Notes: generated by a model not told the origin, from the letters alone. 64,000 bases of DNA from Pavona decussata (GCA_977016875.1 CDRNST010000058.1:4650001-4714000), one strand, 5' to 3'; positions 3,182 through 63,434 are shown, numbered from the stretch's first letter. Made by a program: numbers and translations.

Positions 3182-4319
3182 TAAAGACAGCAAATAGAAA
3201 AAATACCGTGGGGGCTAATAATTCAAAATCTGCGAACCACTCAACTGTGAAATCAAAGTACTCGTTGTACTTTCACACGAGTGAGCCCAACCATTCAAAA
3301 TCTGTGGAGTTTGTGCAGGATAATTCGACCGTTGAGTCATGCTCTTTCGGTCCGTAAGTGTGTCCGTTGAGGCAAAAGAATTGAAAACATGTCGATCGCT
3401 CGTCGAAGCGAACTGTGCAACTGTGAAATCAGATGATTGCTTCACTCTGAAATCAAACGACTCGTTGCACTTTCACTCGAGTTCTTTGCTCGTGGAGGCA
3501 AATAATTCAAAATCTGTGCCGTTTGGGGCGGCTGATCCGTCCACTTCACCAACACCCCCATCCCACGAAAAAGAAGCGTTTTCAACATTTCTTCCCCAAT
3601 GTGGGTTAAACAAATCACTAAACCTGCCATGACCCATTTTCAAAACAAATGCTTGCTGTAGTCATGATTTTTACAACTCATCCAACTGAAACCTACTCTC
3701 CCCACCCTCAAAGTCGGCCCCCTTTTCCAAACCCATTTACTGTTTAATTAAATCCCCACAACTTTATCCCCCTTCGCCAGCACCCACTTTCATATTGAAA
3801 TCACTAGTTTATATACTTATCGAGTGGACGTTCACTCGAGTGTAAACGCTGAACCCTTCAAATCGCTAAAATCGCCGTCTTCAACCTCAAGAACGACAAC
3901 ACACAACATTTAAAGTAAAATTACGTTTATTTTGACGTTAAATGAGAATATTTATCGCAACCTAGTACGATAATACGAGGATTTTCGACATTCCCATACA
4001 TTTCCTCTATAAATTCAAAATACAAACGGTCACACAGTTTGGGTGGGCTCCCTGTGATATTCACAGAAAGTTGAAGTACAGTGCAGTTCTCACCCGAAAG
4101 TAGCGAAGCTAATCAAGTCGGGTGGGAGCAAAAAGAATAAATGAAAGGAGACTAAAAATATTGAACACCACTACCACGATAACAGTGTAAATAACATCTC
4201 AAGATTGTCTTCATTTGGAGGTGATATCCTAAAGAAAAAATTTAAATAAGGGAATTTCCACGGGCGGCACGGAAAAACATGGTCTTTGTAGAACGGTATT
4301 GCCATGAGTTCTGATTTAA

Positions 4320-5097: not shown

Positions 5098-5985
5098 CTA
5101 TGAGAACACGTTATTCTTAGGAACAGTAACTCGTTGCTCTGAAAACCAATTGGGATTTACAATAAAATAGTGTTTCCTTGTCTCTTGAGTCGGGTGGAAG
5201 AAACATGTATCTCGAACATAACGTACATGCTTTGCGTGCTTTGACAACAACGAGCTGGGCCTGGGCGCTACCCTCCTCAGTGTTTGTTCGTCTCCTTGGC
5301 TAAGTTGTGACACCATATCGTCCTTCAAACCTGATGCTGTTTGAAGCACATTTGGCAATTTCTGGGATTGTGCACCGCAAAATGAACCGACTAAACGTGA
5401 GGAAGGCGACTTCGAAACAACAGGGCGGTTGGCCTTGCTTGAGAAACTTGCGGATGAGGGATATTTGAACTGCACTCGCCTCGTAGAAGCCGATTCCCTG
5501 CGTACACTTTGTGCTGATGAAATCCCCAACATCTGCAACACCTGATCGTCTGCCAAATTCTCTCTTGGTGAGCCAATTTCTCTACGTATATCGCATTCGA
5601 GTGGTGGAGCGATCTTACTAAAAACGTCTGGAAGTCTTGGGCCGCTTTCGTTCCGTACGAGAAGCCTGTTGTGACCAAAATCCTTATCACCCTTATCCAC
5701 AGAAGCCTTTTCTTGCTCGTGGTACTTTTCTGTTTGCTGATCAGTGATATAGCTCGCCATTCGAGCGGCAAATGGCGGTCTTAAATAAGTCAGTCTGGTG
5801 CCTACTTCCGAGTCATATCGGACGGCTGCTGTCGGACGGCGAGGTTCGCACCAAGAATATTTAGGCACTTGACTGTATAACACAGGTCCTTCGGAGTCGC
5901 AGAACCTCGTGCTATATTCAGTGTGGAATGGTTTTGTGCGTAGCCTGTCGACGTAGGCATTATACCCTGGATACAATAGTTTCAT
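5098..5985 (-). CDS. Uncharacterised 295-aa basic, S/R/P-rich protein; paralogue 1 of a three-gene cluster
   Basis: Uninterrupted ATG-to-stop ORF. N-motif FHTEYSTRF and C-motif CFFHPTQETRKHYFIVNPNWFSEQRVTVPKNNVFS* are shared with the next two ORFs. Confidence 0.8.
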   Translation of the reverse strand: MKLLYPGYNAYVDRLRTKPFHTEYSTRFCDSEGPVLYSQVPKYSWCEPRRPTAAVRYDSEVGTRLTYLRPPFAARMASYITDQQTEKYHEQEKASVDKGDKDFGHNRLLVRNESGPRLPDVFSKIAPPLECDIRREIGSPRENLADDQVLQMLGISSAQSVRRESASTRRVQFKYPSSASFSSKANRPVVSKSPSSRLVGSFCGAQSQKLPNVLQTASGLKDDMVSQLSQGDEQTLRRVAPRPSSLLSKHAKHVRYVRDTCFFHPTQETRKHYFIVNPNWFSEQRVTVPKNNVFS

Positions 5986-6282
5986 CTTGGAAGATTTCGC
6001 GACAGTTCTATCACGGTATGGTTCTTTTCGTATACAGTTAAACTATCGTTATCATCAAGGCGCCACTACAGTGGCTGTGGTTAATGTCGGCGCTGAAATT
6101 CGTCGTTTTCTCTGCGTTCAGTATTTTTGATCGCACACAGAACTGAAAAAACTTTGGATTTCGTTTGACAAAAAATCGTACAACTTTCTCCCCGTTTTTA
6201 AGCCGGCTTAAAGAACTTGTTCATTCGAACCAGTTACTAACTCTATGGTGATTTCTAAATGTTTAAATTTCCAACGATTCAA

Positions 6283-6294
6283 GTTGCCATGGAC
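6283..6294. promoter_or_regulatory. Partial RFX X-box-like motif upstream of paralogue 1
   Basis: GTTGCCATGGAC, ~300 bp 5' of the ATG at 5985. Confidence 0.35.
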
Positions 6295-6848
6295 TCAGGC
6301 ACTGAGCCATGCCACTGGTAGCTGCTGCGTTAAATTTTTAATAAGAAGTGTCTAGGTTAACAATGCACACAGTGGGTCAGATGGTTTCGTTACCCACAAT
6401 TAATTCCAAACATCCACGAATTAAGTAAATACAGCAATCATTATTCTGGTAAAAAAATTCACACGGCGGTATAGCATGTTCCTTCACAAAGCAGTTTTCG
6501 TTGACAGTTTTCATCAGTCGATGTTGTTCAGTACTATAACAAGATTGGAAAAAGATGCTATACGAAGTCCATAACGTCCGCCTTATTTTACCTAACAATA
6601 ATAAAAATTTACGTATTTACAATTATTATATCTTAACTCACGTATTTTAATCGAACAAGGCATGCAGTTTAAATCCTTTCAGACGGAATAAAGTCTCCCA
6701 TTGTGCAATCCATCAACTTTCAAGTTATTTTTGTAACAAAGAATCTTCTGTGAGTGAGTATACTCCCGTGGTGGGAGGTAAACGGTGAAAACAGTATTGC
6801 TTATAATTATCTGCAATCGAGATCTTTCTATGACCTGAGTGTTTTAAG

Positions 6849-6862
6849 GTTACCAAGGTAAC
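6849..6862. promoter_or_regulatory. RFX X-box-like palindrome upstream of paralogue 1
   Basis: GTTACCAAGGTAAC matches GTTRCCATGGYAAC at 13 of 14 positions. Confidence 0.45.
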
Positions 6863-7240
6863 TGTAATTTCACCGAATTTTGACACTTGTTCAGCTCTTC
6901 ACTTGTTAAATTGCGGTTGAAAGTGTTTATTTTTGAAATAGATTAACTTTTATATTAAGTAACGAAGCCAAGAATATTAGGAAACTAAGCGATATTGTTA
7001 GTCTCACATATTTTACCTGTTTTAAAGAAATCTCAGCTCTCCCCATACTTCTAAACTATCTTTTCTTTAAACTTGCATTTTTTTTGAGAACACTGTTATT
7101 CTCTGAGGTGGCTTGAGTTTTTGATGCGCTTCTAACTTTTTGAACTTTTAGAATAATCGAAACTTAGTCGTATGCAAAAAAGTCACGAGTGGTTTTGGTT
7201 TTCATTGGCTCATAAAGAGGCCCGAGTATTATTAACAAAC

Positions 7241-7693
7241 TGATCACGGAGCGTAGTTAAGTGCAAAACCAAAGCAGTTATTTTTGGCACTCGATTGAAA
7301 ACAACTGTGATTATCGTATGAAACCCAACCATGGATTGAAGCTAAAATTATTGATCCACGGGAGACCGATGAAAGTCTTTTTACTATAGCTGTAAGGATC
7401 GGATGGGGGTAGCTCGGTTCGATATCAAGCATGTCTAAAAATGGTTACTCTTGTTTAAGTTCCTTTCATAGTAAATCTTAAATTAAACCCAATGTCTGGA
7501 AATAATGAAATGAAAAAAATACAGACGGATAGACGAAAAGTGTCGTCTGCATTATGCCGGTAAAATAGAACTTCAGGATCCATGTATTGTTTCAGCTAAA
7601 TCAGTCTTTATATGGTGACTAATAAATAGGTTTGTGGAGACTAGGGAAAACCCACGGCTGATCACGGAAGGAGGTAACTACGCTCCGTGATCA
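7241..7693. mobile_element. MITE with 19-bp perfect terminal inverted repeats
   Basis: TGATCACGGAGCGTAGTTA ... TAACTACGCTCCGTGATCA. TSD not resolved. Confidence 0.6.
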
Positions 7694-8750
7694 TACTAAA
7701 GGTCGTTAATTTTTTATCGCTTCTCTTTGGCCAGATTAGCACCGCTAACCTCAAAAACACTTTTCAGCTTCGCTACAGCTCAAAATCATTTCATGTTCAA
7801 GGACACTCTATACGATCAAATGTTACAAGCCATCTGGAAAAAAAATAAATGACAAATGTTCAAAATCTAGGAAATTTTCATTCCGGCCGAGCTTACAACC
7901 AAACATGAAGTGATACCAAGGACAGGTTAATCTTCTAATGGTAATAAAAGGCCCTTTGGCTCGGTAACACCACAGAATGCCCTGTCTGGGGATATTGTTA
8001 GAATGTCGGAAAGGTCGATGGCCTGGCACTGAATTGGTTGAACCGGATTATCGGTGATTCCGGCTAGAAAGAGGTACTGATATCTTGACACAACCGATCC
8101 ACGTAACTCAGTATGCATTTTTATTCACCAGCAAGGATATTTCGTTATGCTGTACTGGTAATAAGCGAGTACTTAAATAAAATTCCATTCCTGAACAAGC
8201 TGGTAAAAGAAAGCGATAAAACTTGCAAAACTTCCCACAATAATATAAGCAGCGATCATGATGGATTTCATTACGGACCAAAGCTCAACGATTTTCAGAT
8301 AATAGTTCAGTTTTTTACTCAGTTTACGCTGCTCTATTTACCACTCAGGGCTTCGGTAGTCAAGATGTTCGGGTTAATCCTGATATACCTACATGCGAAG
8401 CCTTTTTTTTAGGGCGACGCGTAAATTGTACATGGCAAGTACTACAGAAAAACAGTATATAACTAAGGCAGCTCAGATTTAATCGCTAACAGTAAGCCCG
8501 ATACCTCTTTCTGTCGTTAATAAAAGCTTCGTTGCAATGCATTGTAATTTGTTCATTCATGTTAAATAACATTATTTTACCGTCTTTGGTGTGCAGCCTT
8601 AAGTTTGTTAAGGATATTCATGAAGAAAATTAAAGTTTTCCATCATTGTTACGGTACCGGCATCAGGAGTGCGTGATGGCCCTCTGCCGGTCGTTAAAAA
8701 ATGTTGCGATAGAATTGTTTTGTCTCATCATGAATTCTTGACCTGCATTT

Positions 8751-9338
8751 TCAACCAAACAAAGTGTTTTTCCTGATAGAGTAATTCTTGCGTTCCGAAA
8801 CCCAGTCAGGACTTATAACAAAGAAGCTCCTGGTTGGTTCGTTAGCCGGGTGAAAGAAGCACTGTTTATCAATATAACGAAAGTCCTTTGGAAAACGAGA
8901 CAGCTCGCTCTGAGGTCTTCTTGCCACCAGACTCTGGGGCCGCCTTAACAAGTCTTCGGTACTTGGTCGTTCGGGCTTCGAAAGCGCCGATAGCGAACTC
9001 GCGGGTCTACGACCACTGCCTCGGCTTGAATGAGATAGATTACTACCAGGTCTTTGTATAGCACTTTTTGCTCTTGCAGTTGGTGATGGTTGCAGTCCTT
9101 GAAGATTTATTCTTGTAGGATATCCTCCTCTTTGGCGAAATGGCAGCTGAATCGCTCGTGATGTTTCCAGCTTCTGTGCCTCGTCCCATGCGCTCTTTGT
9201 CTTGAGTGCTGTAGGGATTCGGACGTTCTGTAGTGGGACACGCTCGCCGGTGAAACTTGTTGCGTATTCGCTTTTGAATTGGATCTTAGTGATAGTTTCC
9301 TGCAACAATCCCGGTGCATTTCCATATTGGGCCGGCAT
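8751..9338 (-). CDS. Uncharacterised 195-aa basic, S/R/P-rich protein; paralogue 2 of the cluster
   Basis: First ATG is at 9338 (MPAQY); the ORF-track start at 9413 is GTG. N-motif FKSEYATSF, C-motif CFFHPANEPTRSFFVISPDWVSERKNYSIRKNTLFG*, and internal RPxS repeats. Confidence 0.8.
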   Translation of the reverse strand: MPAQYGNAPGLLQETITKIQFKSEYATSFTGERVPLQNVRIPTALKTKSAWDEAQKLETSRAIQLPFRQRGGYPTRINLQGLQPSPTARAKSAIQRPGSNLSHSSRGSGRRPASSLSALSKPERPSTEDLLRRPQSLVARRPQSELSRFPKDFRYIDKQCFFHPANEPTRSFFVISPDWVSERKNYSIRKNTLFG

Positions 9339-9623
9339 GTTACAATCTTTCCGTTCCAAGACCAAACTGTAAAATATTTTCCCTTCGAGACCGGCCCGGG
9401 ATTCAGTATCCACAAAGCAATGAAATGGCCAGTGTAAAATAATGTCCCCAGACTACCTTATCGTCTGAACAGCTTACTTTCCTAACCACTGAAACCTATT
9501 CCTCACTCCACGAATGCTTCCCGAAGATCGATTTGAAGGATTTGTTTATGATAAATCCCACAGTTTTGGGACAGGGTCAATTGCTGTCCCGAGTTCGCGA
9601 AGCGATTTTTTGTTGCGTTACTT

Positions 9624-9638
9624 GTTGTCTATAGCAAC
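9624..9638. promoter_or_regulatory. RFX X-box-like motif upstream of paralogue 2
   Basis: GTTGTCTATAGCAAC, ~290 bp 5' of the ATG at 9338. Confidence 0.45.
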
Positions 9639-10871
9639 GGAGATCGTTTGCATATCGCATTAACTGTGCTAACAATTCGATTATTTCACTCTTTAGGCTC
9701 CATTGTTATGCAATTCTTTCCGTTTTGAAGGTAATTTAGGGAAGGGCTATTGTTTTGAAGCGTTATTGTTTTTACAAATCTCGAGAAAACCGCACTCAAG
9801 TTATAGGCCATTTTACAATAGTTAAGTGGATGTTTTAGCCACAATAACCACTTCCCCCTGCTCTGATCTTTCTGTCGTATCACTGCTAAATGTACCGGCA
9901 AGTTCATCAATGTCATTAAATCAGAAATTGGATTTTTTAAGATATTAAAAAAATGAACTGCATGTCACAAGAAAGTGCAACTCATTATTTTTATTGTCAC
10001 CACTGAAGAGGCAGCTACACTGATAGCGTACGCCTTCTGCTCCGGGGAGTGTAAACAATGGTGACGATTTTAGTATATATTTTAGCAGCTCCTTCATCTA
10101 GCAGTACGTAGTGTAAAGCTTCACATCACACGTGTTTCTACGATACCGTACTTAAAAGCTTACTTTACGTCATGATTGAAGTCGACCTTGAACTTGTCCG
10201 TTGCACTAATTAAGCATAATATGATCCTCAGTTCTAACTCGTCCACTCGGACTGTAAGAGATACTGCTTTCAGCAAGGTATGACGAAAGTCAGTCTAAAC
10301 TACATGTTAGTACCTTCCTCTCTAAAATTCAATTTGTTTGATTAAATTTAGATTTACGTGAATTGTTTTCTAAAACACAATATAGAAGTGCGGCTCTTCC
10401 GCCAGTTTCTGTGTGCAGCAAAACTCAGTCGTATGCTGTTAAGATTTGGACTGAATTTTACGAAAGAAAAAGGAGTCAGCGTTCAAAATTCACAGGAGTG
10501 CTCCGTCATTCAGCAGTGCAAAGTCAAGAATTCGTTTCGCAGTCCAGTCTCGATGAACAGTTCAATCTGAGCAGTCGATGAACACTTCAAAGCTCTTTAA
10601 AAATTCTACGAATCGTGAATAGCATGTACATATGAAATATGCCGCTCAACCAGTCGTAGTTCAGTTTTTGAGACAGATTTGTTTGCTGAAGTTTTTTCGG
10701 TGTGTTCGTCAATAAGCAATTAAATTAAATGTAAGTAAAAGATTAAGTTCGCGCTTTTCGACTAACAAAAACATCATTATAAACCATCCGACACCGTCAG
10801 AAATATTAACAATGAAATAATAAACCACTGCTATCAAATACAAAGAAAAGAGCGAGCTAACGTAGAAACCA

Positions 10872-11225
10872 TCAAGAAAAAGGATTGTTCTTTCGAACAT
10901 CTCGCTCAGACACCCAGTCCGGCCTCACTGTGAAATACGTCCGCCCCTCTTTGGCAATGCTGTAAAAGGCGTTGCTATGCAGAAACACGTAGTTTCCAAG
11001 TCCGCCAGATCTCGCAGCCGGCACGAACCCGGGCTGAAAGCTCTCTCGAGGCTGACCCCGCACATAATCGGGAGGGCGCCGGTACATGAAACTCGAGGCA
11101 AGCTTGATATTTGGTTGCACAAGTTTTACCTTTGGTGTGAAGCTGAAGCGGTATTCGGATCTTGAAGGATGTGTCTTGTTGACTGTCATGCACAGTAGTG
11201 GAGGTAGCTTTACTTTCTCAGGCAT
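10872..11225 (-). CDS. Uncharacterised 117-aa basic protein; paralogue 3 of the cluster
   Basis: First ATG is at 11225 (MPEKV); the ORF-track start is TTG. N-motif SRSEYRFSF and C-motif AFYSIAKEGRTYFTVRPDWVSERDVRKNNPFS*. Confidence 0.75.
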   Translation of the reverse strand: MPEKVKLPPLLCMTVNKTHPSRSEYRFSFTPKVKLVQPNIKLASSFMYRRPPDYVRGQPRESFQPGFVPAARSGGLGNYVFLHSNAFYSIAKEGRTYFTVRPDWVSERDVRKNNPFS

Positions 11226-18696: not shown

Positions 18697-20754
18697 GTGA
18701 GTAAGTAAAGGAACTAAACAACAGTCATAACTGAATCTTTACTTCATAGTCGATCCTTGGGAATTTACAGCTCAGTTATTGGCCGACAGCACTTTCTGTG
18801 GTAAATTATTCAACAGTCACATGCGTTTTGATTGAATGTACGCTTCTCGAAGGTCCTCAGCCCAACAAGAGAAAATTTACTTTTCTTATTAATATTGATA
18901 AAACATTTTGTCTTGAGTCGCGAGATATTAGTGCAGATGGAAGTTTTAGAGGTGCAACAGCAGGTCGAAAATCAGTAAGACAAGATTCCATTCTTACATA
19001 AAATGTTTCTCTGCTAAAATATCCAGAAGAGGAATACGAAAATACTAGCTGGTTTCACCAACAGTTTAAAGTACCTACGTTTCAATAACAAAAAAAGTCC
19101 AGTTTTCGTCTCAACCTCAAATAAAAAACAGAGGCTATTATATTAATACGAACTAATAAACTGGAATTTTCAACAAGAATAATGTCATAAAGCTTTTTAT
19201 CATCAAATTCTAATTGATCAGCTTGGAATTTTTATCAGTTTATTTTACGTAAAGAAACACGTTTGCATTTTCAATTCAAGTTACTTCTCTTTTCTTTAAC
19301 GTGATTTCTTTCAGTGCTATCTGCACTGTTGTTTCAAGAGTGCTGTTTCACGACCTTGTGATTCCTAACTAATTCCGCGCGTCGTGGCCATGAAGGGGGT
19401 TGGAACTGCCATGGTCATCATGATTGTTGTTGCCCTCGGCGAGAAAATAAGGGAGCGGACCTGGACGAATTGCAACAATCGGAACAGATCAGCTCCCATC
19501 GGAAAACTTGTAACGATTACATTGTTCCAGGGACTCAATTAACTTCAAAAAGGCTATTGAGCGAGTCATAACGAAGGGCGGATGGGATGAAAATGGATGG
19601 CAAGTAAAATTTCCTATTCCCTTTAACCTTTCCATATTCTATTGACAGACCTGTACAAGTCTATTGGTCATGGCCTCTGGTAAATCAATGCTATTTACTA
19701 GTCTGCAAGGTTTGGAGGTGGCTGGTTACGTTGGAGCAGGAAGGGTTCCAGCTAGAAATTTCAGTGTTCTTGAAATTCGCTAGTACTGGGCGTGTAATCT
19801 GTCGTGAAACAAGATGATATCATAACTTCTTCGTGTTCCACGAACGTTTGTTACGTATAATAACTAATGTTCAGTTTTTTCTTGTTTCCTTCTCTACATG
19901 TTCGTTTGATAAATTCAATGGGAGGACCACTTCAAAGCTCTATAACCAACAAACAATTAAACATAAAAAGTTCCAAGTTTCAATTACCTATGACTGGACA
20001 CTCAACCTCGTTCCCAGGATCTCTCCTCTTGGAGAGACCCTGAGAATGAGGTTGCTGGACACTTTGTTCGCTGACCCTAGTGAATACGTCTCTATTTAGA
20101 TCCGGAGTATTGCAGGGAATGTGAATACACCTCGCATGAATCGAATCTGAACTTATCAGATTTGTGGGCGGATAAAATACAACTTACCAGATTTGTGGGC
20201 AGATAAAAAATCTCATGAGTCTAGTCGAGGGACTGTCAAAGTGAATTAAGTGCTTATAATTATACAAATTAATCCCAAACAAGAAGCTTAAACCTGGGCC
20301 TAGGAATGATATTTTGTTGACGTATGGTAGCGGATCAGATGAAACAGTGACAGATATATAGAGCCGTTTTGTTATCTCTGAAGTTAAAAGAAGAAAAAAC
20401 CGGGAACAAATCGTCGCAAAATGTTACAGAGATTGATCTCCTTACGTCAGAGGTATTAACAAATTGGAGCCATTAAGACCAATTCACAAGATTTGAAGAT
20501 TCATACCGATGCCCCATAGTACAGGAGAACAAGGTTTTCTTACAATTAAATTATTGACATCACTCATTAATACATTCGCTATTTAGTGGGCCAAAACTTT
20601 CTTCTATTCTCTTGCAATTGTATTAAAATGGATCTCCGTCCACTTCAATTTTGTTCATATATTGTAAATAACAAATACAGCAAATCTCATTTACCAAGTT
20701 GAATTGACTATTTTTTGCCTTTTTATGACTGTGCAATTACTTTTGATCTTGCAG

Positions 20755-21078
20755 CTTGTAATTATTTGAGACTAGCTAATGGAAACTCGAAAGGAGAAGG
20801 AAGAGTGGAAATTTTCTACAATGGCACCTGGGGAACTGTTTGTGACGACAACTGGGATAAGAAAGACGCGCGTGTCGTTTGTCATGAACTTGGGTTCAGT
20901 AAGGCCCTTAGAGCTCCAACACACGCCCAGTTTGGTGCGGGAAGTGGCCCCATATGGTTGGATGAAGTACAATGCGTAGGAAATGAAAGTACTTTGACGA
21001 ATTGCGGGCACAATGGATGGAGAATTAACGATTGTAGCCACTATGAAGATGCGTCAGTGATCTGCTTAAGGAATTTGA
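20755..21078 (+). CDS. RTK-A exon: group A SRCR (scavenger receptor cysteine-rich) domain
   Basis: LRLANG..EGRVEIFYNGTWGTVCDDNWD...VVCHELG...GPIWLDEVQCVGNE..L..C.H.GW....CSHYEDASVIC. TTGCAG acceptor, GTATGC donor, 324 nt, phase 1-1. Confidence 0.95.
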
Positions 21079-21803
21079 GTATGCCAACAATATTTCGTAC
21101 CCAGACAACTATTTTTTTTGGAATAATTGCATGCAGGAGAATAATGTTTTGTTATCGTATTGTCTGATCAAGGAAAAAGAATTGGTTAAAACGCTGATCT
21201 CATCCTAGAATAATATCCAATCCTTTATTTCAGTAAAAAATGAAGGAAGCGCTATGTGGCTGGATTAAATGAATTACCAGGAGGTGGTGAACACAAATGC
21301 GTGCACTAAAATATGCAATTTGAGATAGCGGTGCAACCGCTAATCAACACAAATTGGGTCGATAATCATAGAAAATAAATAGTTGAGTTCGTCAGGTGCA
21401 ATAAATTACACCAGAGTCCGTGCTCCACAAAGAGCTTCGGTTCTAAATAGCTAAAACGGGAACTTGTTACGCATCTTTCCAACGAAAGAAGGAAAAACAG
21501 ATTTGGAAGCAATATGTTACTTTATTTGAAAATACTTTGAAAATGATGCTTACACAGATCATCGGCTAGTATTTACTATCTAAGTTCCTATTTCGAAAAA
21601 AAAAATGAAGGAAATTTCATAGATTCACCAAGTAAAACGAAGGAAGTTTGAACATGAACAAGGATCCTGCACAAGAGTGTCTGCTTAGCAGTAAATCCTG
21701 TTTCCTGTTATATTAACGATTATTAAAACCAGGATTCTTATAACCTGCGATAATCTTGCTTGGAACTTTATTAAAGTAACACGATTGTATTATGATGTTT
21801 TAG

Positions 21804-23020: not shown

Positions 23021-23263
23021 TTAAAGCTTCATACACCGTTCCCAGCCTACCAGTTATTCACTATTTTATTCATCTCATGTATTTAATAGTTAGATGAGAA
23101 ATATTGGATAAATGTGGGTTCAAACTAAAATCTCGGTATGAGGTTGGGCTTTATATCTGCAACAGTACATGAAAAGCTATCACTATATTTAATTGTGTAA
23201 TTAATTATGGATCTGCGTGTTAATTGTTAATTGCGTTAACAATTTTTTTTCTTGCTATTTAAG

Positions 23264-23802
23264 TTTCAGTGGGTTGCCGCCGTTTATCGAAGGAAGGTGT
23301 CCTGGCAGCAAAGCTCCCCTTTTCAACCAATCGAATTCCTTCGCCTCAGCCCCTAAAGTGAATTTCCATGGTTCCAGTTTCACAATTTCCTGCTGGATAA
23401 AGCAAACGAAATGGAGCGACATGGGGGTGATTTATGGAGACTGGCATTACCCTCGCGGGCAGTTTCTGCTTAGCGCTGCCAATCAAAGTATTGTATTCTA
23501 TCGAAACAGCACCGTAAACAAAGATTGGTGGTCGTTGCAAAGTACAAACCTTTCTTTGATTGACTGGACACACGTTGTGGTCACGTGGCATCATCTCACT
23601 CGGGATGTGGCAATCTATGCTAACGGTAAAGAAGTAGGCAAGAGGATGTATTCTCCAAAGGAAGCATTCTACGGACCCACGGGGAAGCCTTTCATGATTG
23701 GTAACGACGGCCTTACGCTTGACCAGCAGTTCCACGGATCAGTGATGGATCTTTACGTATTTGACGAGGCATTGTTGCTGGATGAAATCAACGTGATAAG
23801 AG
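23264..23802 (+). CDS. RTK-A exon: LamG-like/pentraxin (concanavalin A-like jelly-roll) domain 1
   Basis: FTISCWIK, WTHVVVTW, IYANG, FMIGND, FHGSVMDLYVFDEAL..DEI. Phase-2 acceptor and phase-1 donor. Confidence 0.92.
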
Positions 23803-25441
23803 GTGTGAGTTTCATGCATTTCCTAGTGATAAATACTGAACATTTTTAAATTTAAAAGAAATATGTTAACTTGCAGGGCTATCTCCAATAAAAAAAATTC
23901 CTCTTCTGCATGGAAAGACAGTGTTAGACATTTGAAATCCAAAAGCATTTCAAGTCCACGCTTATGAACGGGCTGGCAACGAATCTCCTTTCATTTCATA
24001 CGTTTGCCTCATTTATGGAATCATAAAACTTTTGAAGACTAACAACTCCTCCTGTTGGCATGAGTGGAATTAGCTGATTTGTTTTTTAATGTCACCTAAA
24101 CTATTAGTTTTGATTGATTGATAGCTTTGGATTCTTATAGTAAAGCTATAAGCGCTATAATCTTTTGGTACCGTATGACTGCCATACCTAATCGTACCTT
24201 TTTGGCTCGCCGAGGGTATTTTGGCTCGACGAAGGGGGATTAGCTAGTTACAGTACTCAAATTCAGACCAAATCCTGGTGATATTTTTAGAAGTTACAGT
24301 AATAAAATTTGTCGGGCGTCCTTCGTGTGGCCTGCGAAGAGAATAATACGGCGGTGTCAACAAACGACACAAAAAGTGATGAATGAAAAATTATTTAACT
24401 TTGATCTTTTTTAGTTTATTTTACTTAGAGCAAAGTGACAAATCGTTGTAATAAAATATGTGTAAAGTCGTTCTCCGCAAAACTAATATTGGCATTTGAA
24501 AACGAGACAATTACAATGTATACTGAATGTTTCAGTACTTGTCCGAAAACATCGGGCAGTTGGCGAGCGCCCTCCATTTTAGTTTTGGCGGAACGTTTTT
24601 ACTCTTTTTACCACCGGAAAACACCTGCTAAATCCTAAATTGCGAAGTTTATGTTTTAACTGGCAAAACCTCAATTTAGTTTATCGTACAATGATATTAC
24701 TTTACTTGAATTCAGTAAAATTGATATCATGCGATATCATGTCAGTGACTTGATATGGTAGATTATTAGGAGAGTAGACTAGGCTTCTGATTGGGTTATT
24801 GCGAATTTGGGTACGGTAATTCTAGATATCGATGTCACAAGTCGTTGCACCCAATATACCGCCTTTAAAAAAGATGGAAGGTGCCATTTCAAATCGGGCT
24901 CAGATAGACCCGAGTTCAGCTCTTTTACCAGCTCAAGAGTAAACAGCTAGTACTCCTTTTTCTTTTCTGACCAATCGCGTTATTTTTTATAATTTGTAAA
25001 TATTTCCCTCTACTAAATATTAGCATTGATTAGCGGATTTCCTGGATACCTAAAACTGTACTAAATACCTAAATGTCACTCTTTTCATACGCCATGCATT
25101 TACACTGATAAACGTTTCAAGCAGTGTGTTTTGAATGATCGAGCACTCAATCAATCTGTCAAATGTGTTTCTACCAAATGCAATTCATATGCACGCTCAT
25201 GAACGGTATGGCAACGAATGTCCTTTCATTTTATACTTGTGCCCTATATATGGAGTAATAAAACTTTTTTTTAAAGAGAATCTCATGTTATTTTGTTGAA
25301 TTAAAAAGAATAAGTCTGAAAATGTTTGAACAATGCACCTCCTTTGAGGGTAGCATCCCATTTTGTGAACCATGAGAAAATTGCGGTTTAGCAAACGAAA
25401 AGGGACGATTGAGTAAATATCCTTATATTTATCTTTTATAG

Positions 25442-31775: not shown

Positions 31776-32169
31776 GTTGGTGTGTAATTAGCCTTTTTAA
31801 ACACCAGTCACTGATTGCATTACCAGCTTTCTTGGTGGCATGAGTGAAGATAGCTTAATTTTGTTTATTGATTTCATAGCTTTGAATTCTTGTAATAAAA
31901 CAAACAGCTATAATCTTAAAACCAGCTAAACTTTATCTGTTTTCATTTTTAAATGTTTCCCTGTACTAAATATCAGTTTTTATGTGTATTTCCTAGAAGG
32001 CCATAATAGATGCATAAATGCAACTCTCTTCATAAGCCATGCATTTACATTTATATACTTTCCAAACAGTGAGCTTTGGATGATCGAGCAATCAATCAAT
32101 CTGTCAAATTTTCCTCTTTTCCTTTCAAAATCTTAAGACTATCATGTTTCCACTTACGATCCTTTGCAG

Positions 32170-32469
32170 GTGTACCTTTTGTCGTAAACAGCAGCAAGGA
32201 AGTTATAGGGGGAGCCGTTTTAGTCAAATGGGAGCCTCCCATGGAAAGGATATGTCATGTTGTGGAGTACAACGTTTACTACAGAGAAGTAATTCTGCGG
32301 GATGAAAAAGGCCACTGGAATTTAATAACTGTCGATAGGAACACCACCAGCTATACCCTTCACCTGGAGTGTTGGAAACAGTATGAAATAACTGTCACCG
32401 CCTTTTATTCACACGGAGAAAGCGACAAGGAGGACAGAAAGATATGGAACTTCAAAACTGGACTTAAAG
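32170..32469 (+). CDS. RTK-A exon: fibronectin type III domain 3
   Basis: VKWEPP...YNVYYR...SYTLHLECWKQYEITVTA...GES. 300 nt, phase 1-1. Confidence 0.92.
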
Positions 32470-33332
32470 GTAAAAGTTGGTGCTTAACCCAGGTTTCCGC
32501 GCCACTAAGGAGTACCTATGGGTGTTCAATAATCTCTTCTGGATTGTATACTTTTATTTCCGGGAAAAAATTATGATTTTGGTTTCCTTGGGTAATCACA
32601 GTTTTAACACTGCAGATAATTGCTACTCATCATATCTTTTATCAGGGTTGCCATTAGCAGCGTGGTTGTATAATAATTTTTGAGGGAAGATTGTGATCTA
32701 AATGGCTTTTTGTTCTTTAGTTTTTAATTTTACTTACAGATTCCGTGATTTGTAAGCTCTTCTGAAACCAGCCAGCAAATGTGAATAAAGCCGCTGCAAA
32801 AATAAATATAAACTATAATACACAAATGTTTTCAAAATAATCGTTAGATCCGGTCATATTCCAATTAAACTGATAGATCAAAATTGATCGTTTGTCTCAC
32901 GGCTTTGTAGCATAAGTATGGTTAGCGACGTTTCCTCGTCTTCATGAGGCGTTGGTGTCGACTGTCTGCATGTGGATTGGTGGTAATTATCGTATTTTGA
33001 TCCTTTCCCCACTAATACAATCATGAGATAAACGACCAAGTCTGATTAATCATTAAAATCTATGATAAACGAACATCAAAATAAACCGTTTTTGAAACAT
33101 TACACAGTAACATTTGATAAGGTTTTCTCTTAAGGCGCAACTTGAGTCGAACTAATAAATGTTATCGTCTTGTCTTGAAAAAATGAGCTACCCAAAGGAT
33201 TTCTTAATCCATTTCTGAGTTTTTTTGATACAGATAGGCAATAGGCGGAGAAAGTTCGGGGGTCACCCAAAAGTTTTGGAGCGATTTTCCCCGCTATCAA
33301 ACAACTTTTTTCTTTTTAAACATTATGTGCAG

Positions 33333-36236: not shown

Positions 36237-36378
36237 TGTGGAATGTTGTGAGCTTTGTAACCGCTCCTCGAGTAGTTTTTCAGTAGAACAGTTCGGATGA
36301 AACACGTTGTCCACGGTTAGAATTAAAAGCAGTTGTGTTCTCCAACTTTGGCTGGTTTAATGGACTCAGAATACTACA
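36237..36378 (+). repeat. 5' LTR
   Basis: TGTGGAATG...ATACTACA. I count 6 mismatches to the 3' LTR. Confidence 0.95.
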
Positions 36379-36403
36379 TTGGCGACGAGAAACGGATCAA
36401 AAC

Positions 36404-39400
36404 ATGGCATTGATCGGGAAAATCGAGAAATACAACGAGAAGGACAACTGGATCGAGTACACCGAACGACTCAAGCATTACTTCGCGGCGAATGAAATTA
36501 CGGACAACAACAAGAAGCGAGCGGTACTGCTAAGCGCATGTGGAGCGAAAACTTACAAGTTAATCAGTAATTTGGTAAATCCAAGGAAGCCGACCGACAA
36601 GTCGTTTACAGAGTTAGTCAACCTGGTGAAGAATCGTCTAAATCCAAGACCCTCTTCAATCGTCTATCGATTCAAATTTAACAGCTGTTTTCGTCAACCG
36701 GGAGAAACAATACAACAATATGTCGCCGAACTGAGGAATTTATCGGAGCACTGTGAATTCAACGACCAACTGGAAAAAAAATGCTTCGTGATCGACTGGT
36801 TTGTGGCGTGAATGATGAACGCATACAGCGGAGATTACTGGCGGAAAGTCAACTGGAATTCAAGAAGGCAATGGAATTAGCCGCCGTGATGGAAACCGCC
36901 GACAGGAATACACGTGATCTGAAGCACGGGAATCCGAACGAAAAACCGAAAGAACCACAAGTTAACCGCGTGACCAAGGAGCCACCGAAACAAAAACAGC
37001 CGCCAAGAAACCCGAGGCAATGAAAAGAATGCTATCGTTGTGGAGGACAGTTTCATGAGGCCGATAATTGCAGGTATAAAGAAGAAGAGTGCTATAGATG
37101 CCGTAAGAAGGGTCACAAGACAAACAAGTGTCGCAGTAAACGTAAAACGAGTTTTCAAAACAGCAACAAGTTTGGAAACACACATCGCCTGGAGACATCA
37201 GAAGAGGCAGAGGAAGAATGCGAAAAATACACGATGTTTCACCTAGCTGCAAAGGAGAGAAAACCGTATCGAGTCGACCTACAACTAAACGGAGTTCAGA
37301 CGAGTATGGAAGTGAACAACGGCGCTGCAGCTACGGTCATCAATGAAGAAACCTATAAGAGAATAATTGATAGAAATTCTGCGAAGAATCGACCGCAGAT
37401 GGGAACCGCTAAAGTGAAGCTTCGAACGTACACAGGTGAATTAGTCAAGGTCTTAGGAACTGTGAACGTTGTTGTAAATTATGAGAAGCAAGAAGTGGAA
37501 CTGCAAACACTCGTAGTGGAAGGATCAGGGCCTAACTTACTGGGAAGGGACTAGTTGAGAGTTCTGAGACTCAACTGGAAGGAGCTGTTCAAAATCCGAG
37601 TTGACGAAAACAACCATTCATGAGTCTTCACTTGGAAGGTTGATCGACCGGTACTCGGAAGTGTTTCAAGAAGGACTTGGAACATTCACAGGCCCAAGGG
37701 CGAAGATCCATGTGGAAACAGAGGCAAAACCGAGGTTCTTGAAGGGGAGACCAGTGCCATACGCCATGACAGGAAAGATTGAGGCTGAACTCAAAAGGCT
37801 ACAAGATGAGGGAACAATCGACCCTGTTCAGTTCTCTGAATGGGCGGCCCCCATTGTACCTATCCTAAAACCAGATGGCTCCATTCGTATCTGCGGAGAC
37901 TACAAAACAACTGTCAATCAAGTGTCTAAGCTGGACAGTTACCCTATCCCGAAGGTTGAAGATCTCTTGCAACTCTAGGATGAGGTAAAAAATTTACTAA
38001 ACTGGACATGAGTCAGGCCTATCAGCAATTACTTCTGGATGAAGAGTCCAAACAGTACACCACCATCAACACACACAAAGGATTGTTCCAGTACAACCGT
38101 CTGCCTTACGGAATATGGTCAGCACCTGGAATATTTCAGCGGAACATGGGGAATCTACTGCGGAACATTCCTCATGTAATCTTCCGGGTGGATGACATAC
38201 TAGTGTCCGGAGCCTGTGACGAAGATCACTTAAAGAACCTGGAAGAAGTCTTGAAACGACTAGCAAGCGCGGGCTTGCGACTGCGGAAAGACAAGTGTGT
38301 GTTCATGGAACCTCAAGTAACGTACCTGGGGCACAAGGTCAGCAAGGAAGGCATTCAACCGTTGCAAGACAAGGTCGATGCTATTACCAATGCACTAGCA
38401 CCTACGAATGTGTCAGAGCTCAGATCGTACCTGGGCATGATTAACTACTACCAGAAATTTCTGCCCAACTTGTCGAGTGTGTTGGCTCCACTACATGGGT
38501 TGCTACGTAATGAGACTTGTTGGCATTGGGGTAAAGAGCAGATGCATGCATTTCAAAAGTCGAAGGAATTCCTGAAGTCCCCTAGACTCCTGGTCCACTA
38601 CGACAGTTAGAAGAAGTTAACCTTGGCATGTGATGCATCACAGTATGGTTTGGGGGCCGTTCTTTCTAATCAAATGGATGATGGCTCAAAGCATCCAAAC
38701 GCTTATGCTTCCAGGACCCTGTCCGACGCAGAAAAAAATTACTCCAACTTGGAAAGAGAAGCACTAGCGCTGGTATTCGGGGTGAAGAAATTTCACCAGT
38801 ACATTTATGGCAGACATTTTAGCTTGGTAACTGACCACAAACCGTTAGAATCATTGTTTAATGAGAAGAAAGATATACCTACTATGGCAGCAGCGAAGAT
38901 TCAGCGTTGGGCCTTGACGCTGGTTGCCTACGACTACTCCATTGATTGCAAACCAGGACCTGAACACGCCAATGCTGATGCCCTCAGCCGACTGCCCTTG
39001 CCTGTTAGTCCGCCGACTACACCGTTGCCTGCAGGAACTGTTTTTGCAACGGAAATCCTCAATTCAACACCAGTGAGTGTGAATGAAATCAGAACCGGAA
39101 CCAGATGTGACCCGATACTGTCTCAAGTAGTCAAGTATGTACAGCAAGGTTGGCCTAATCACAACTCAGAACAAGTATTTAAGCTCTACTTCACAGGGAA
39201 AGATGAATTCAGTGTTCAGGATGGGTGTTTGCTATGGGGCAATCGAGTGGAGGTACCCCCTAAAGAAAGAGGAAGAGTGGTAGAGGAGTTACACAAGACA
39301 CATCCTGGAATTCGCCGTATGAAGGCGTTGGCGAGAGGTTATGTGTGGTGGCCGAAAATGGATGCACATTTGGAGCAGAAAGTGCGTCAGTGCAGTCCTT

Positions 39401-40384
39401 GCCAGGAAAACAGGAAGTCACCGCCAGAAGCTCCTTTACATCTCTGGGAATGGCCTCATAAATCCTGTGTCCGACTTCACCTAGATTATGCAGGTCCGTT
39501 CCTTGGAAAAATGTTCCTCAACGCGATAGATGCCCACTCCAAGTGGATGGAGGCGTTTCCAATGAACACATCAACATCAAGTGCGACTATTGACAAATTG
39601 AGAATCACTTTTGCAACACATGGTCTGCTGGAAATCGTTGTCACAGACAATGGTAGCAACTTCACAAGCAAAGAGTTTGAAGATTTTCTCAAACAAAATG
39701 GAATCCGTCCCATCAGAACTGCGCCATACCACCCTGCGTCAAATGGACTGGCTGAGAGGGCCGTACAAAAATTCAAGGAGGGAATGAAGAAAATGAGTGG
39801 AGGAAGTGTGGAGACGCGAGTTTTGCGATTTCTAGCCCGTTACAGAATCACCCCTCAGACTTCCAGAGGAGTGTCGCCAGCAGAATTACTGTTAGGGAGG
39901 AAACCCAGATCGAGACTAGACCTAGTCCACCCACAAATTGGAAGGAAAGTAACATCAAAACCAGACTTCTCAGAAACAGGCACATGACTGGCATGCTAAG
40001 GAACGCACCATGCTGGAAGGAGAAACTGTTTATGCAAGCAACTTCAGAAGAGGACCAAAACAGTCGACTAGTCCAACTTCGTTTGTAGTTCAACTGGAAG
40101 ATGGGGGACTGTTGAGAAGACACCAAGACCATCTGATACAGCGGTCCACTGTTCTCCAAGCGTCTATTCCTAATCAAGAGGAAGTCCCAGCTGACCTGAT
40201 TCCAGCATCGGTGGAAGCTGAAAAGCCAGATTTGCAGGTGGAAGAAACTCCGACCAGCTGTCAAGACACCCCACCAGCACTGATTGAGCCTGTGCAGTCT
40301 GCTCCCCTAGGTGTCCCAGAAAAACGCTACCCTACTAGGAACAGACACGCCCCTCGATACTTGGCTGATTTTGTTACTAAGTGA
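36404..40384 (+). pseudogene. Gypsy gag-pol with multiple stops and frameshifts
   Basis: LRDRLVCG, CYRCG..H...C twice, degraded protease (EVNNGA), WAAPIV/ICGDY, RVDDIL, ACDAS.YGLGAVL, TDHKPL, integrase HHCC, D(N)G and NGLAER. Stops at 37021, 37552, 37976 and 38608. Confidence 0.93.
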
Positions 40385-61981: not shown

Positions 61982-62532
61982 TTTCAGTGGTAATCCATCC
62001 TATATCGAAGGGTGGTGTCCAGGAAGCAAGGCCCCCATCTTCGACCGATCAAATTCCTTCGCCACTGCTCCGATAATCGATCTCAATCGCAGGAATTTTT
62101 CCATTTCCTGTTGGATAAAACCAATGAGGAGACTTGTAACTGGCGACGACGAAACGATTTATAACGACTGGACTTCACCATATCAGTTTAGACTTGCTCT
62201 TGTAAACCGGAAGGTCTATTTTGAGCGCCGTAGCACCGACAATATCCATGAGTGGTACTACTTTAGAGGCGTTAAAGTTTCTTCGAACATTTGGACACAC
62301 GCGGCAGTCACGTGGGATCACGCAACTGGAAATTCAACAATTTATGTTAACGGTAAAAACGCAGGTTATCTTACGTTTCCCTCCAGAAAAATATTCTTCT
62401 ACTCGCCTACGGGAAAGCCATACAAAATTGGCAATGACGGTCACCCGCACGATCACCAGTTCCATGGATCAGTTATGGATCTTTATGTTTTTGGCACGGC
62501 ATTATCACTGGATCAAATCAATAAACTAAGAG
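61982..62532 (+). CDS. RTK-B exon: LamG-like/pentraxin domain (intact)
   Basis: FSISCWIK, WTHAAVTW, IYVNG, YKIGND and FHGSVMDLYVF. Same splice sites as 31225-31775. Confidence 0.92.
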
Positions 62533-63434
62533 GTTATTGCCTAATTTCCTTTTTATAAACATAAGTCACTGGTTACATTTTAACTCTTCGTCGTGGCATA
62601 AGTGAAATAAACTGAAATTTAAGGCACTAGTTTTGATTGACTGATAATAAAACAGAGCCCATGATCTAAAAACCGGCTAAACTACTCGGTCTGGAGTTTT
62701 ATTTTTAATTTAAATTACTTGTTTCTTAGGTTCTTTTTGTCTATTTCGTCCATGTTGCACGGGTTTAGTCATCCTTTTACCATGGGGAAGTTTAAAAAGC
62801 TAATTTAAAAACTATTAACGTTAACTACTAACGTTAACGTGAAGATTGCCTTCGCGGGGGGGCATAAACGTTTGAGTGTGGTTGCGCTAAATATCCATGT
62901 CGCAACTCATCGTATGCAACATATCGGCCTCAAGAAAGATCGAAGGTACCAGGTTCAAATCACACTCAGATACTCTCAAGTTCAGCTCTTCAACCAGCTC
63001 GAACTAAACAGCTAGTCCTCCATTTTAAATTTAATTGGTTTTGATTTATAAATATTTGCTTGAACTTAATATAAGTATTTAATGACGGTGACTCCTTTTG
63101 CTATTGGGCAAATGTTCTAAGCATCTCAGGACGATCCGAGAGACCCAGATTTCTTTGGGACGGCACCTAGAGTTATTGTCGCTTAATTACCTCTTAAATT
63201 GCATGCATTTCTATCCTCAATTTTATTTTTGAATTCCAAATCATCTTGCTGTACCTAAAACTGTAATAAACAGCTAAATACACTTCCTTTACCAGCCATG
63301 CACTTACATGTATACGATTTCCAAACAGTGTGCTTGCGATGATTAAAAACTTATTAACAGCTAATCTGTCAACTTTTTTCCCACGCTATTGAAATCGTTA
63401 AGATAATCATGTTTCTATTTATGATCCTCTGCAG

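Follow-up and report, generated by a model that had tools for sequence, protein, structure and literature searches.

A 64,000-nt stretch of the genome of the coral Pavona decussata (GCA_977016875.1 CDRNST010000058.1:4650001-4714000; here called the window) carries three neighbouring genes, ORF1, ORF2 and ORF3, which we found to be tandem paralogues of ancient origin that belong to a metazoan protein family without a name. Each encodes a small protein with a short tyrosine-containing unit near its N-terminus, a variable basic middle and a conserved module at its C-terminus. The N-terminal unit resembles the Mn-type repeats of microtubule proteins, and the C-terminal module resembles the end of mammalian SPMIP6 (also named SMRP1), a microtubule inner protein of solved structure from the A-tubule lumen of sperm. 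On balance, these motifs incline us to the view that the trio encodes microtubule inner proteins (MIPs) of cilia or flagella, which would have an N-terminal anchor on the tubulin lattice and a C-terminal anchor on the tektin side.

A first-pass annotation of this DNA, made from the sequence alone, had called three co-oriented single-exon ORFs of 295, 195 and 117 aa, and all three were confirmed on the minus strand (Table 1); the mechanical ORF of ORF2 begins at a GTG at 9413, and its first ATG places the start at 9338. Homologues were recovered for ORF1 (n = 55, including Acropora; all unnamed or 'uncharacterized'), ORF2 (n = 38, including Montipora, Nematostella A7RSA8 and Actinia; all 'uncharacterized') and ORF3 (n = 20, including Nematostella A7RSA9 at 65% identity), and orthologues of the trio were found across Hexacorallia, from corals to sea anemones. 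The synteny comparison that the annotation had proposed showed that one coral (L018) keeps the order and orientation of ORF3, ORF2 and ORF1, with identities of 90%, 79% and 53%, respectively. ORF2 and ORF1 are again neighbours in a second coral (L022), the Nematostella orthologues of ORF3 and ORF2 lie head to head, 1.2 kb apart, and a more distant genome (L029) has an ORF3-like gene tail to tail with an ORF1-like gene. The Nematostella ORF3 orthologue (L001 8423-8770, minus strand; A7RSA9 in UniProt) was not called as a gene at this locus in the newer chromosome-level record, which may be an annotation gap.

Calculated against two coral orthologue sets, whole-gene dN/dS was 0.10 for ORF3, 0.14-0.24 for ORF2 and 0.35-0.47 for ORF1. 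Selection on the terminal motifs, suspected from the start, was borne out: the C-terminal domains gave dN/dS values of 0.06-0.27 overall (0.06-0.27 in ORF1 and 0.06-0.07 in ORF2), in contrast to 0.58-0.66 for the ORF1 linker. Mean pairwise column identity in ORF1 was 0.63 in the N-terminal block, 0.26 in the linker and 0.70 in the C-terminal domain, and it reached 0.75 in the C-terminal domain of ORF2. Contigs from same-species runs of three studies (runs presumed to be RNA and probably from whole colonies; such contigs inform neither on expression level nor on tissue or cell type) covered the three genes as separate islands and left the intergenic DNA around the trio bare. No splice joint was found in the RNA-type contigs over the trio, the sole joint being a 31-nt skip without intron ends, and the pattern fits three separate, unspliced transcription units. 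Because the ORFs show purifying selection, orthologues, synteny and transcript-like contigs, we conclude that they are real, transcribed and functional genes. The 31-nt skip occurs in one contig at 9350-9382, in the 5' leader of ORF2, and RNA-type contigs of other individuals carry a 12-nt insertion at 8690-8693, just past the ORF2 stop; both are most simply read as indel polymorphisms. Secreted peptides were ruled out by eye, as no N-terminus resembles a signal peptide.

Comparison of the three coding sequences by blastn revealed no DNA similarity (best E ~1), and their basic middles, rich in S, R and P, could not be aligned between paralogues, both as the annotation had reported. At the protein level the similarity is well past chance. 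In profile searches of the whole 602-Mb assembly in six frames, a profile built only from ORF2 orthologues retrieved three loci, and no other below E = 1 genome-wide: ORF1 (E = 2.8e-14, across 100 profile positions), ORF3 (4.0e-4) and one further locus, on contig C122 (8.2e-8). Likewise, a profile built only from ORF3 orthologues retrieved, genome-wide, the same C122 locus (6.2e-6), ORF2 (0.0018) and ORF1 (0.0079). These sequence comparisons indicate that the three genes are paralogous. The common C-terminal region aligns almost without gaps over 45-70 aa, longer than the ~40 aa at first proposed, extends to the stop codon in all three proteins and ends in PDW(V/F)SE...KNNxF[SG].

The N-terminal motif was found where it had been described, in the form of a [KRT][ST]EYxxx[FY] unit whose tyrosine is residue 24-25 in all three proteins, yet by itself it shows no statistically detectable similarity between paralogues because it is too short. 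Support for this unit is instead that each orthologue set keeps E-Y, without exception, at one fixed position: T22, E23 and Y24 are invariant in 14 of 14 ORF1 sequences, and E24 and Y25 are invariant in 16 of 16 ORF2 and 12 of 12 ORF3 sequences. The N-termini of ORF2 and ORF3 further share a longer pattern, P-x-L-L..T..K.....S-E-Y-x-x-x-F-T.

Contrary to what the annotation had implied, the trio is not self-contained; the Pavona genome holds four copies of the family, the trio and a multi-exon long form on C122 (G000 contig C122, 3795458-3801405, minus strand; also loci L005, L019 and L021). P0133, a transcript-derived protein of 393 aa, maps there in at least 7 exon-sized pieces over ~6 kb, the exons having been located individually, one match at a time. 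The first exon of the long form, M-P-Q-W-V-Q-L-P-P-N-L-V...G-K-S-I-Y-T-T-D-Y, has the same N-terminal pattern as the trio, and the last exon, which is the profile match on C122, ends D-Y-D-Y-V-H-D-N-S-F-F-T-N-T...G-Y-F-I-I-A-P-D-W-V-S-E. An exhaustive profile search of 1.84 billion representative proteins returned 51 proteins at E <= 0.001, with uncharacterised matches outside cnidarians in Saccoglossus, Diadema, Saccostrea, Ostrea, Owenia, Elysia, Babylonia and Paralvinella. The C-terminal motif also terminates proteins, all uncharacterised, in hemichordates, sea urchins, molluscs and annelids, lying near the C-terminus in every non-cnidarian match, and most non-cnidarian members with a complete N-terminus start with a W/K-T-Q-Y-x-x-D-F-type unit. 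Across the family the C-terminal consensus is D-Y-x-H-x-N-S-x-F..T....R-G-x-F-I-I-x-P-D-W-V-S-E, and the N-terminal unit, [KRT][ST]-E/Q-Y-x-x-x-[FY], is present as a single copy within the first 30 residues. The long form resembles the bilaterian members most closely. By this comparison, the trio is an intron-free branch, in anthozoans, of a metazoan family that has no name and whose long form looks ancestral, and retrocopying followed by tandem duplication is a plausible origin for it.

We found no name for this family. In line with the annotation, which recognised no named domain for the PxWxSE motif, Pfam gave no family for the three ORFs at E <= 10; it also gave none for ten bilaterian members at E <= 1 and nothing relevant for 42 motif segments (PF15181 was not among the families matched), and a literature search on the Nematostella, Actinia and Saccoglossus accession numbers found no paper. 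Some members repeat the C-terminal module: P0117, a 196-aa protein from another ENA assembly (L030, 6001-6591 / 3653-3874), has three tandem copies, with a further single copy resembling the last exon of the long form ~2 kb away, and P0121 and P0122 have two copies each. In a lophotrochozoan subgroup (P0143 and P0152 from Ostrea and P0122 from Paralvinella), the module is followed by a second conserved motif, W-P-G-R-R-C-K-S-A-P-P-P...R-N-P-I-T-W. Two hits that matched in many stretches, P0126 and P0130, were discarded as translated tandem DNA repeats.

To relate the C-terminal module to proteins of solved structure, we searched the 177,635 sequences of the PDB with three versions of its profile. 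The top match of all three was bovine SPMIP6 (sperm doublet structure 8OTZ, chain B0, residues 269-297/304), at E = 0.41 with cnidarian short forms, 0.0032 when bilaterian members were added and 0.00049 with long forms alone. SPMIP6 was the sole match of the first profile, and the other matches of the later profiles, all at E >= 0.12, were bacterial chains that merely contain PDWVSE. The aligned segment of SPMIP6 spans S-x-F, T, R, Y-V-V-H-P and V-S-E, and so extends beyond the core. SPMIP6 is the only relative of the module with a solved structure, and we consider a link to SPMIP6 probable at the level of the C-terminal module. A language-model atlas gave weak leads (scores <0.9, to be read as leads only) to DUF4722, SMRP1, HDNR/CMIP6, TSC21, CFAP68, CFAP107 and TEX33, those with a name all being ciliary inner-protein families; the SMRP1 cluster was among the leads of ORF1, alongside several other MIP families, and the DUF4722 and TEX33 leads were without Pfam support.

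Published work on SPMIP6 also gives the proposed two-anchor tether a concrete model. The protein sits next to protofilament A12, packed against both tektin-4 and the N-terminal end of TEKTIP1, and recurs with a 16-nm period (bioRxiv 10.1101/2022.09.29.510157). Tekt1-null sperm lose the tektins together with the C-terminal ends of SPMIP6, TEX37 and FAM166C, while the N-terminus of TEX37 remains on the wall (PMC13066092). SPMIP6 (C9orf24) also marks human multiciliated cells (PMC13430588), and SMRP1 is listed with the single-Mn-unit proteins by Andersen et al. (PMC10973386). Like the coral proteins, SPMIP6 is small and has an S-x-F..T....R..Y-V-V-H-P-E-F-V-S-E element a few residues from its end, and its single listed Mn unit and tektin-dependent C-terminus fit a layout with two anchors (PMC10973386, PMC13066092). 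It differs in being 304 aa long, compared to 117-295 aa for the coral trio, in having F in the core where the coral and wider metazoan family has W, and in being unalignable outside the C-terminal element; the coral genes, for their part, are intron-free and comprise three tandem paralogues in addition to the long form. SPMIP9 (TEX37) and CIMIP2C (FAM166C) offer a working analogy, with an N-terminal part on the wall and a C-terminal part that depends on tektin (PMC13066092), but no sequence relationship to them was detected, the TSC21 (TEX37) cluster being a weak lead.

The N-terminal unit points in the same direction. Searched against the PDB, its profile matched best a flagellar-associated protein of Chlamydomonas in which six T/S-E-Y-x-x-x-Y units occur (axoneme structure 8GLV, E = 0.021). 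The Mn resemblance that the annotation had noticed therefore has a flagellar counterpart, although membership of the MAP6/SAXO group did not hold up (no MAP6/SAXO Pfam match in the three ORFs at E <= 10) and the closest characterised relative is SPMIP6. Mn-repeat proteins (MAP6, SAXO1/2/5 and the Chlamydomonas FAP363 type) share with the trio an S/T-E-Y-x-x-x-F/Y unit followed by T/x-K and a basic, disordered character; MAP6 and SAXO proteins differ in carrying arrays of Mn units, where each coral protein has one, and in lacking the C-terminal module. The catalogue of luminal modules of Andersen et al. (DM10, Mn, NWE, SNYG, ELLEn, PYG and GFG) is without a PDWVSE motif (PMC10973386). Its NWE motif, [ILV]-L-I-G-N-W-x-E, lies N-terminal to two Mn units (PMC10973386). 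NWE seam proteins (CFAP68, CFAP95, CFAP107, SPAG8 and CFAP161) are luminal MIPs that, like the trio, combine a hydrophobic run followed by (N/D)-W...E with Mn units, and CFAP68 and CFAP107 clusters are among the weak language-model leads. In the coral proteins, however, the W motif is C-terminal (i.e., the order is reversed) and reads F-I-I-x-P-D-W-V-S-E, with one extra residue from W to E, and NWE protein chains gave no PDB match to our motif profiles at E <= 10.

X-boxes, the binding sites of RFX factors, are established upstream of ciliary genes (PMC2873420), and the Pavona genome encodes RFX DNA-binding domains and at least 4 tektins. Using the consensus GTNRCC-N(0-3)-RGYAAC, we found 3 strict sites in the window versus 0.6 expected, among them a perfect palindrome upstream of ORF1 (Table 1) that lies ~390 nt past the last RNA contig. 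In both L018 and L022, a site that fits the consensus lies equally far from the ATG (806-865 nt) within a conserved block, and the substitutions in these sites preserve the consensus. An X-box-like site with one mismatch precedes ORF2; this 15-mer recurs unchanged at the corresponding position in L018 and L022, in a promoter block of 83% identity, and the Nematostella orthologue of ORF2 is likewise preceded, at a similar distance, by a one-mismatch site. The sites at 6849 and 9624 are the only X-box-type sites within 4-13 kb of the window. As a regulatory hint, the ORF2 site is suggestive only. As a control, a strict X-box was found upstream of one of the three tektin genes checked. Two one-mismatch X-box-like sites also lie 600-800 nt upstream of exon 1 of the long form.

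Since the C-terminal module appears to be the same element as the end of SPMIP6, we somewhat favour a microtubule-inner-protein reading of the trio. Its products would be small, intrinsically disordered MIPs of motile cilia and sperm flagella, in which the N-terminal unit would bind the tubulin lattice on its luminal side and the C-terminal module would bind a second luminal partner, most likely the tektin filament as for SPMIP6, with the basic, variable linker (~30, 100 or 150-200 residues) setting the reach. The earlier interpretation as a whole is partly supported, its main direction being largely right. Its guess of an axonemal or sperm-flagellar location accords with the match to the SPMIP6 C-terminus (E = 4.9e-4) and the X-boxes at ORF1 and ORF2, although the location is one that we infer; its two-anchor tether fits the loss of the SPMIP6 C-terminus when tektins are missing (PMC13066092), with binding to tubulin and tektin still presumptive and the second anchor more likely to be directed at tektin than at tubulin. 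AlphaFold2 gave ORF3 a mean pLDDT of 50.8 with no secondary structure (47-row alignment); the absence of a predicted fold would be expected of an extended MIP and proves nothing. SPMIP6 knockout mice are fertile (bioRxiv 10.1101/2022.09.29.510157; PMC12808527), and no dramatic phenotype is therefore to be expected.

A number of results weigh against this reading. The link to SPMIP6 covers 26-29 residues at E 5e-4 in a database the size of the PDB, and the cores differ (PEFVSE in SPMIP6, PDWVSE in the family). The Pfam model of SMRP1, PF15181, matched no family member tested, and SPMIP6 was reached neither by full-length profiles of ORF3, the bilaterian long forms, ORF1 or ORF2 nor by a PDB search with one single sequence. 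No axoneme chain of sea urchin or other invertebrates in the PDB carries the motif, despite the existence of a sea-urchin homologue. The Mn-type match is borderline (E 0.02), and the strict Mn syntax, [TS]-[TS]-x(4)-[YF] (PMC10973386), is by eye not satisfied by HTEYSTRF, KSEYATSF and RSEYRFSF, which have E at the second position. Finally, the ORF2 X-box-like site has a mismatch, one-mismatch sites occur at a background of 0.36 per kb, and no X-box was found upstream of ORF3.

In one alternative, the short cnidarian paralogues, while related to SPMIP6, would act on other microtubules (centrioles, cytoplasmic or cortical arrays, or a manchette-like spermatid array) or on the microtubule outside, and not inside axonemal doublets. 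The name SMRP1 was first given for an association with the manchette, Mn units also occur in the cytoplasmic-microtubule protein MAP6 and the centriolar protein MDM1 (PMC10973386), and the RNA-type contigs are mute on cell type. We nevertheless regard this alternative as unlikely, given that both motifs have axonemal chains as their relatives of solved structure, that the X-boxes upstream of ORF1 and ORF2 point to a ciliogenic programme and that the language-model leads are all ciliary MIP families.

It is similarly improbable, in our judgement, that the similarities to SPMIP6 and Mn units are chance or convergent short linear motifs in unrelated basic disordered proteins that bind another partner through PDWVSE, such as spermatid nuclear or chromatin proteins or adaptors. 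The matches are indeed short and moderately significant, Pfam SMRP1 is without a match, S/R/P-rich basic middles are found in many nuclear proteins and PDWVSE alone occurs by chance in unrelated bacterial chains. However, the SPMIP6 match includes the upstream S-x-F..T....R..Y-V-V besides the core, falls at the very end of the protein, as it does throughout the family, and gains strength stepwise with more distant members, and two independent profiles each selected an axonemal protein from the whole set of PDB sequences. That the ORFs are non-functional (chance ORFs, pseudogenes or transposon-derived) is very improbable and refuted as far as sequence evidence goes: they are intron-free and unannotated in some assemblies (as with the uncalled Nematostella ORF3 orthologue at L001), but dN/dS well under 1, orthologues conserved from corals to sea anemones, transcript-like contigs in several studies, and the four genome copies, kept synteny and absence of tandem repeats in the window, which also rule out a transposon origin, all stand against it.

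A bolder proposal, which we put forward tentatively, is that the PDWVSE module serves across metazoans as a hitherto undescribed element that docks on the luminal tektin bundle (or another A-tubule partner), and that it forms the conserved core of SPMIP6. Anthozoans might then have made one multi-exon gene into three 'rulers' without introns, which keep both anchors and differ in linker length, each reaching from the tubulin wall to its own point in the lumen. The tubulin and tektin genes of the Pavona genome are all intron-interrupted. MIPs are mostly short, disordered and fast-evolving, so that their relatives beyond vertebrates and Chlamydomonas are difficult to recognise. A correct assignment would reveal relatives of SPMIP6 in invertebrates and a new conserved module, the partner of which could be read directly from existing cryo-EM maps; it would also provide, in a tractable cnidarian (two genes in Nematostella), a natural three-length linker series for studying how tethers position luminal filaments. 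Should the assignment be wrong, a well-defined, conserved and unannotated metazoan family would remain.

Table 1 Features of the trio locus, in positions of the 64,000-nt window.
Feature	Position	Strand	Remarks
ORF1 CDS	5098..5985	minus	295 aa, single exon; fastest-evolving of the three paralogues
ORF1 C-terminal domain	5101..5283	minus	residues 235-295, CFFHP...YFIVNPNWFSE...KNNVFS; alignment and ORF2-only profile
ORF1 conserved N-terminal block	5731..5985	minus	residues 1-85; column identity; translation-checked coordinates
ORF1 Mn-like unit	5902-5928	minus	FHTEYSTRF, residues 20-28; translation-checked
RNA-type contig cover, ORF1 and 5' leader	5400..6462	minus	examined stretch started at 5400, 3' end outside
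RFX X-box, perfect palindrome	6849..6862	.	GTTACCAAGGTAAC; ~865 nt upstream of ORF1 ATG
AATAAA signal	8120-8125	minus	downstream of ORF2; sequence
RNA-type contig cover, ORF2 with 5' and 3' untranslated parts	8159..9516	minus	contigs
ORF2 CDS	8751..9338	minus	195 aa from first ATG, single exon
ORF2 C-terminal domain	8754..8963	minus	residues 126-195, RRPQSLVARRPQ...CFFHP...FFVISPDWVSE...KNTLFG; alignment, column identity, dN/dS
ORF2 N-terminal motif	9246..9314	minus	PGLLQETITKIQFKSEYATSFTG; translation-checked; aligns with ORF3 and long-form N-termini
ORF2 Mn-like unit	9252-9278	minus	FKSEYATSF, residues 21-29; translation-checked
X-box-like site, one mismatch	9624..9638	.	~285 nt upstream of ORF2 ATG, ~110 nt past last RNA contig
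ORF3 CDS	10872..11225	minus	117 aa from first ATG, single exon; most conserved of the three paralogues
ORF3 C-terminal domain	10875..11000	minus	residues 76-117, NYVFLHSNAFY...YFTVRPDWVSE..KNNPFS; alignment and ORF3-only profile
RNA-type contig cover, ORF3	10882 to beyond 11399	minus	contigs
ORF3 N-terminal motif	11133..11207	minus	LPPLLCMTVNKTHPSRSEYRFSFTP; translation-checked
ORF3 Mn-like unit	11139-11165	minus	SRSEYRFSF, residues 21-29; translation-checked

The trio region itself contains no N and no tandem repeats. Elsewhere in the window, the plus strand at 36335-39987 has raised G+C, a strong AT skew and, by eye, gag-like, reverse transcriptase/RNase H and integrase-like ORFs; together these resemble a Ty3/gypsy-type retroelement broken up over several frames. 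Exon-like ORFs on the plus strand at 20715-21167, 23217-23849, 32076-32576 and 62124-62558 were assigned by eye to SRCR, two pentraxin/LamG-like and FN3-like domains, and probably belong to at least one multi-exon receptor-type gene near the trio; both pentraxin/LamG-like domains contain HGSVMDLYVF.

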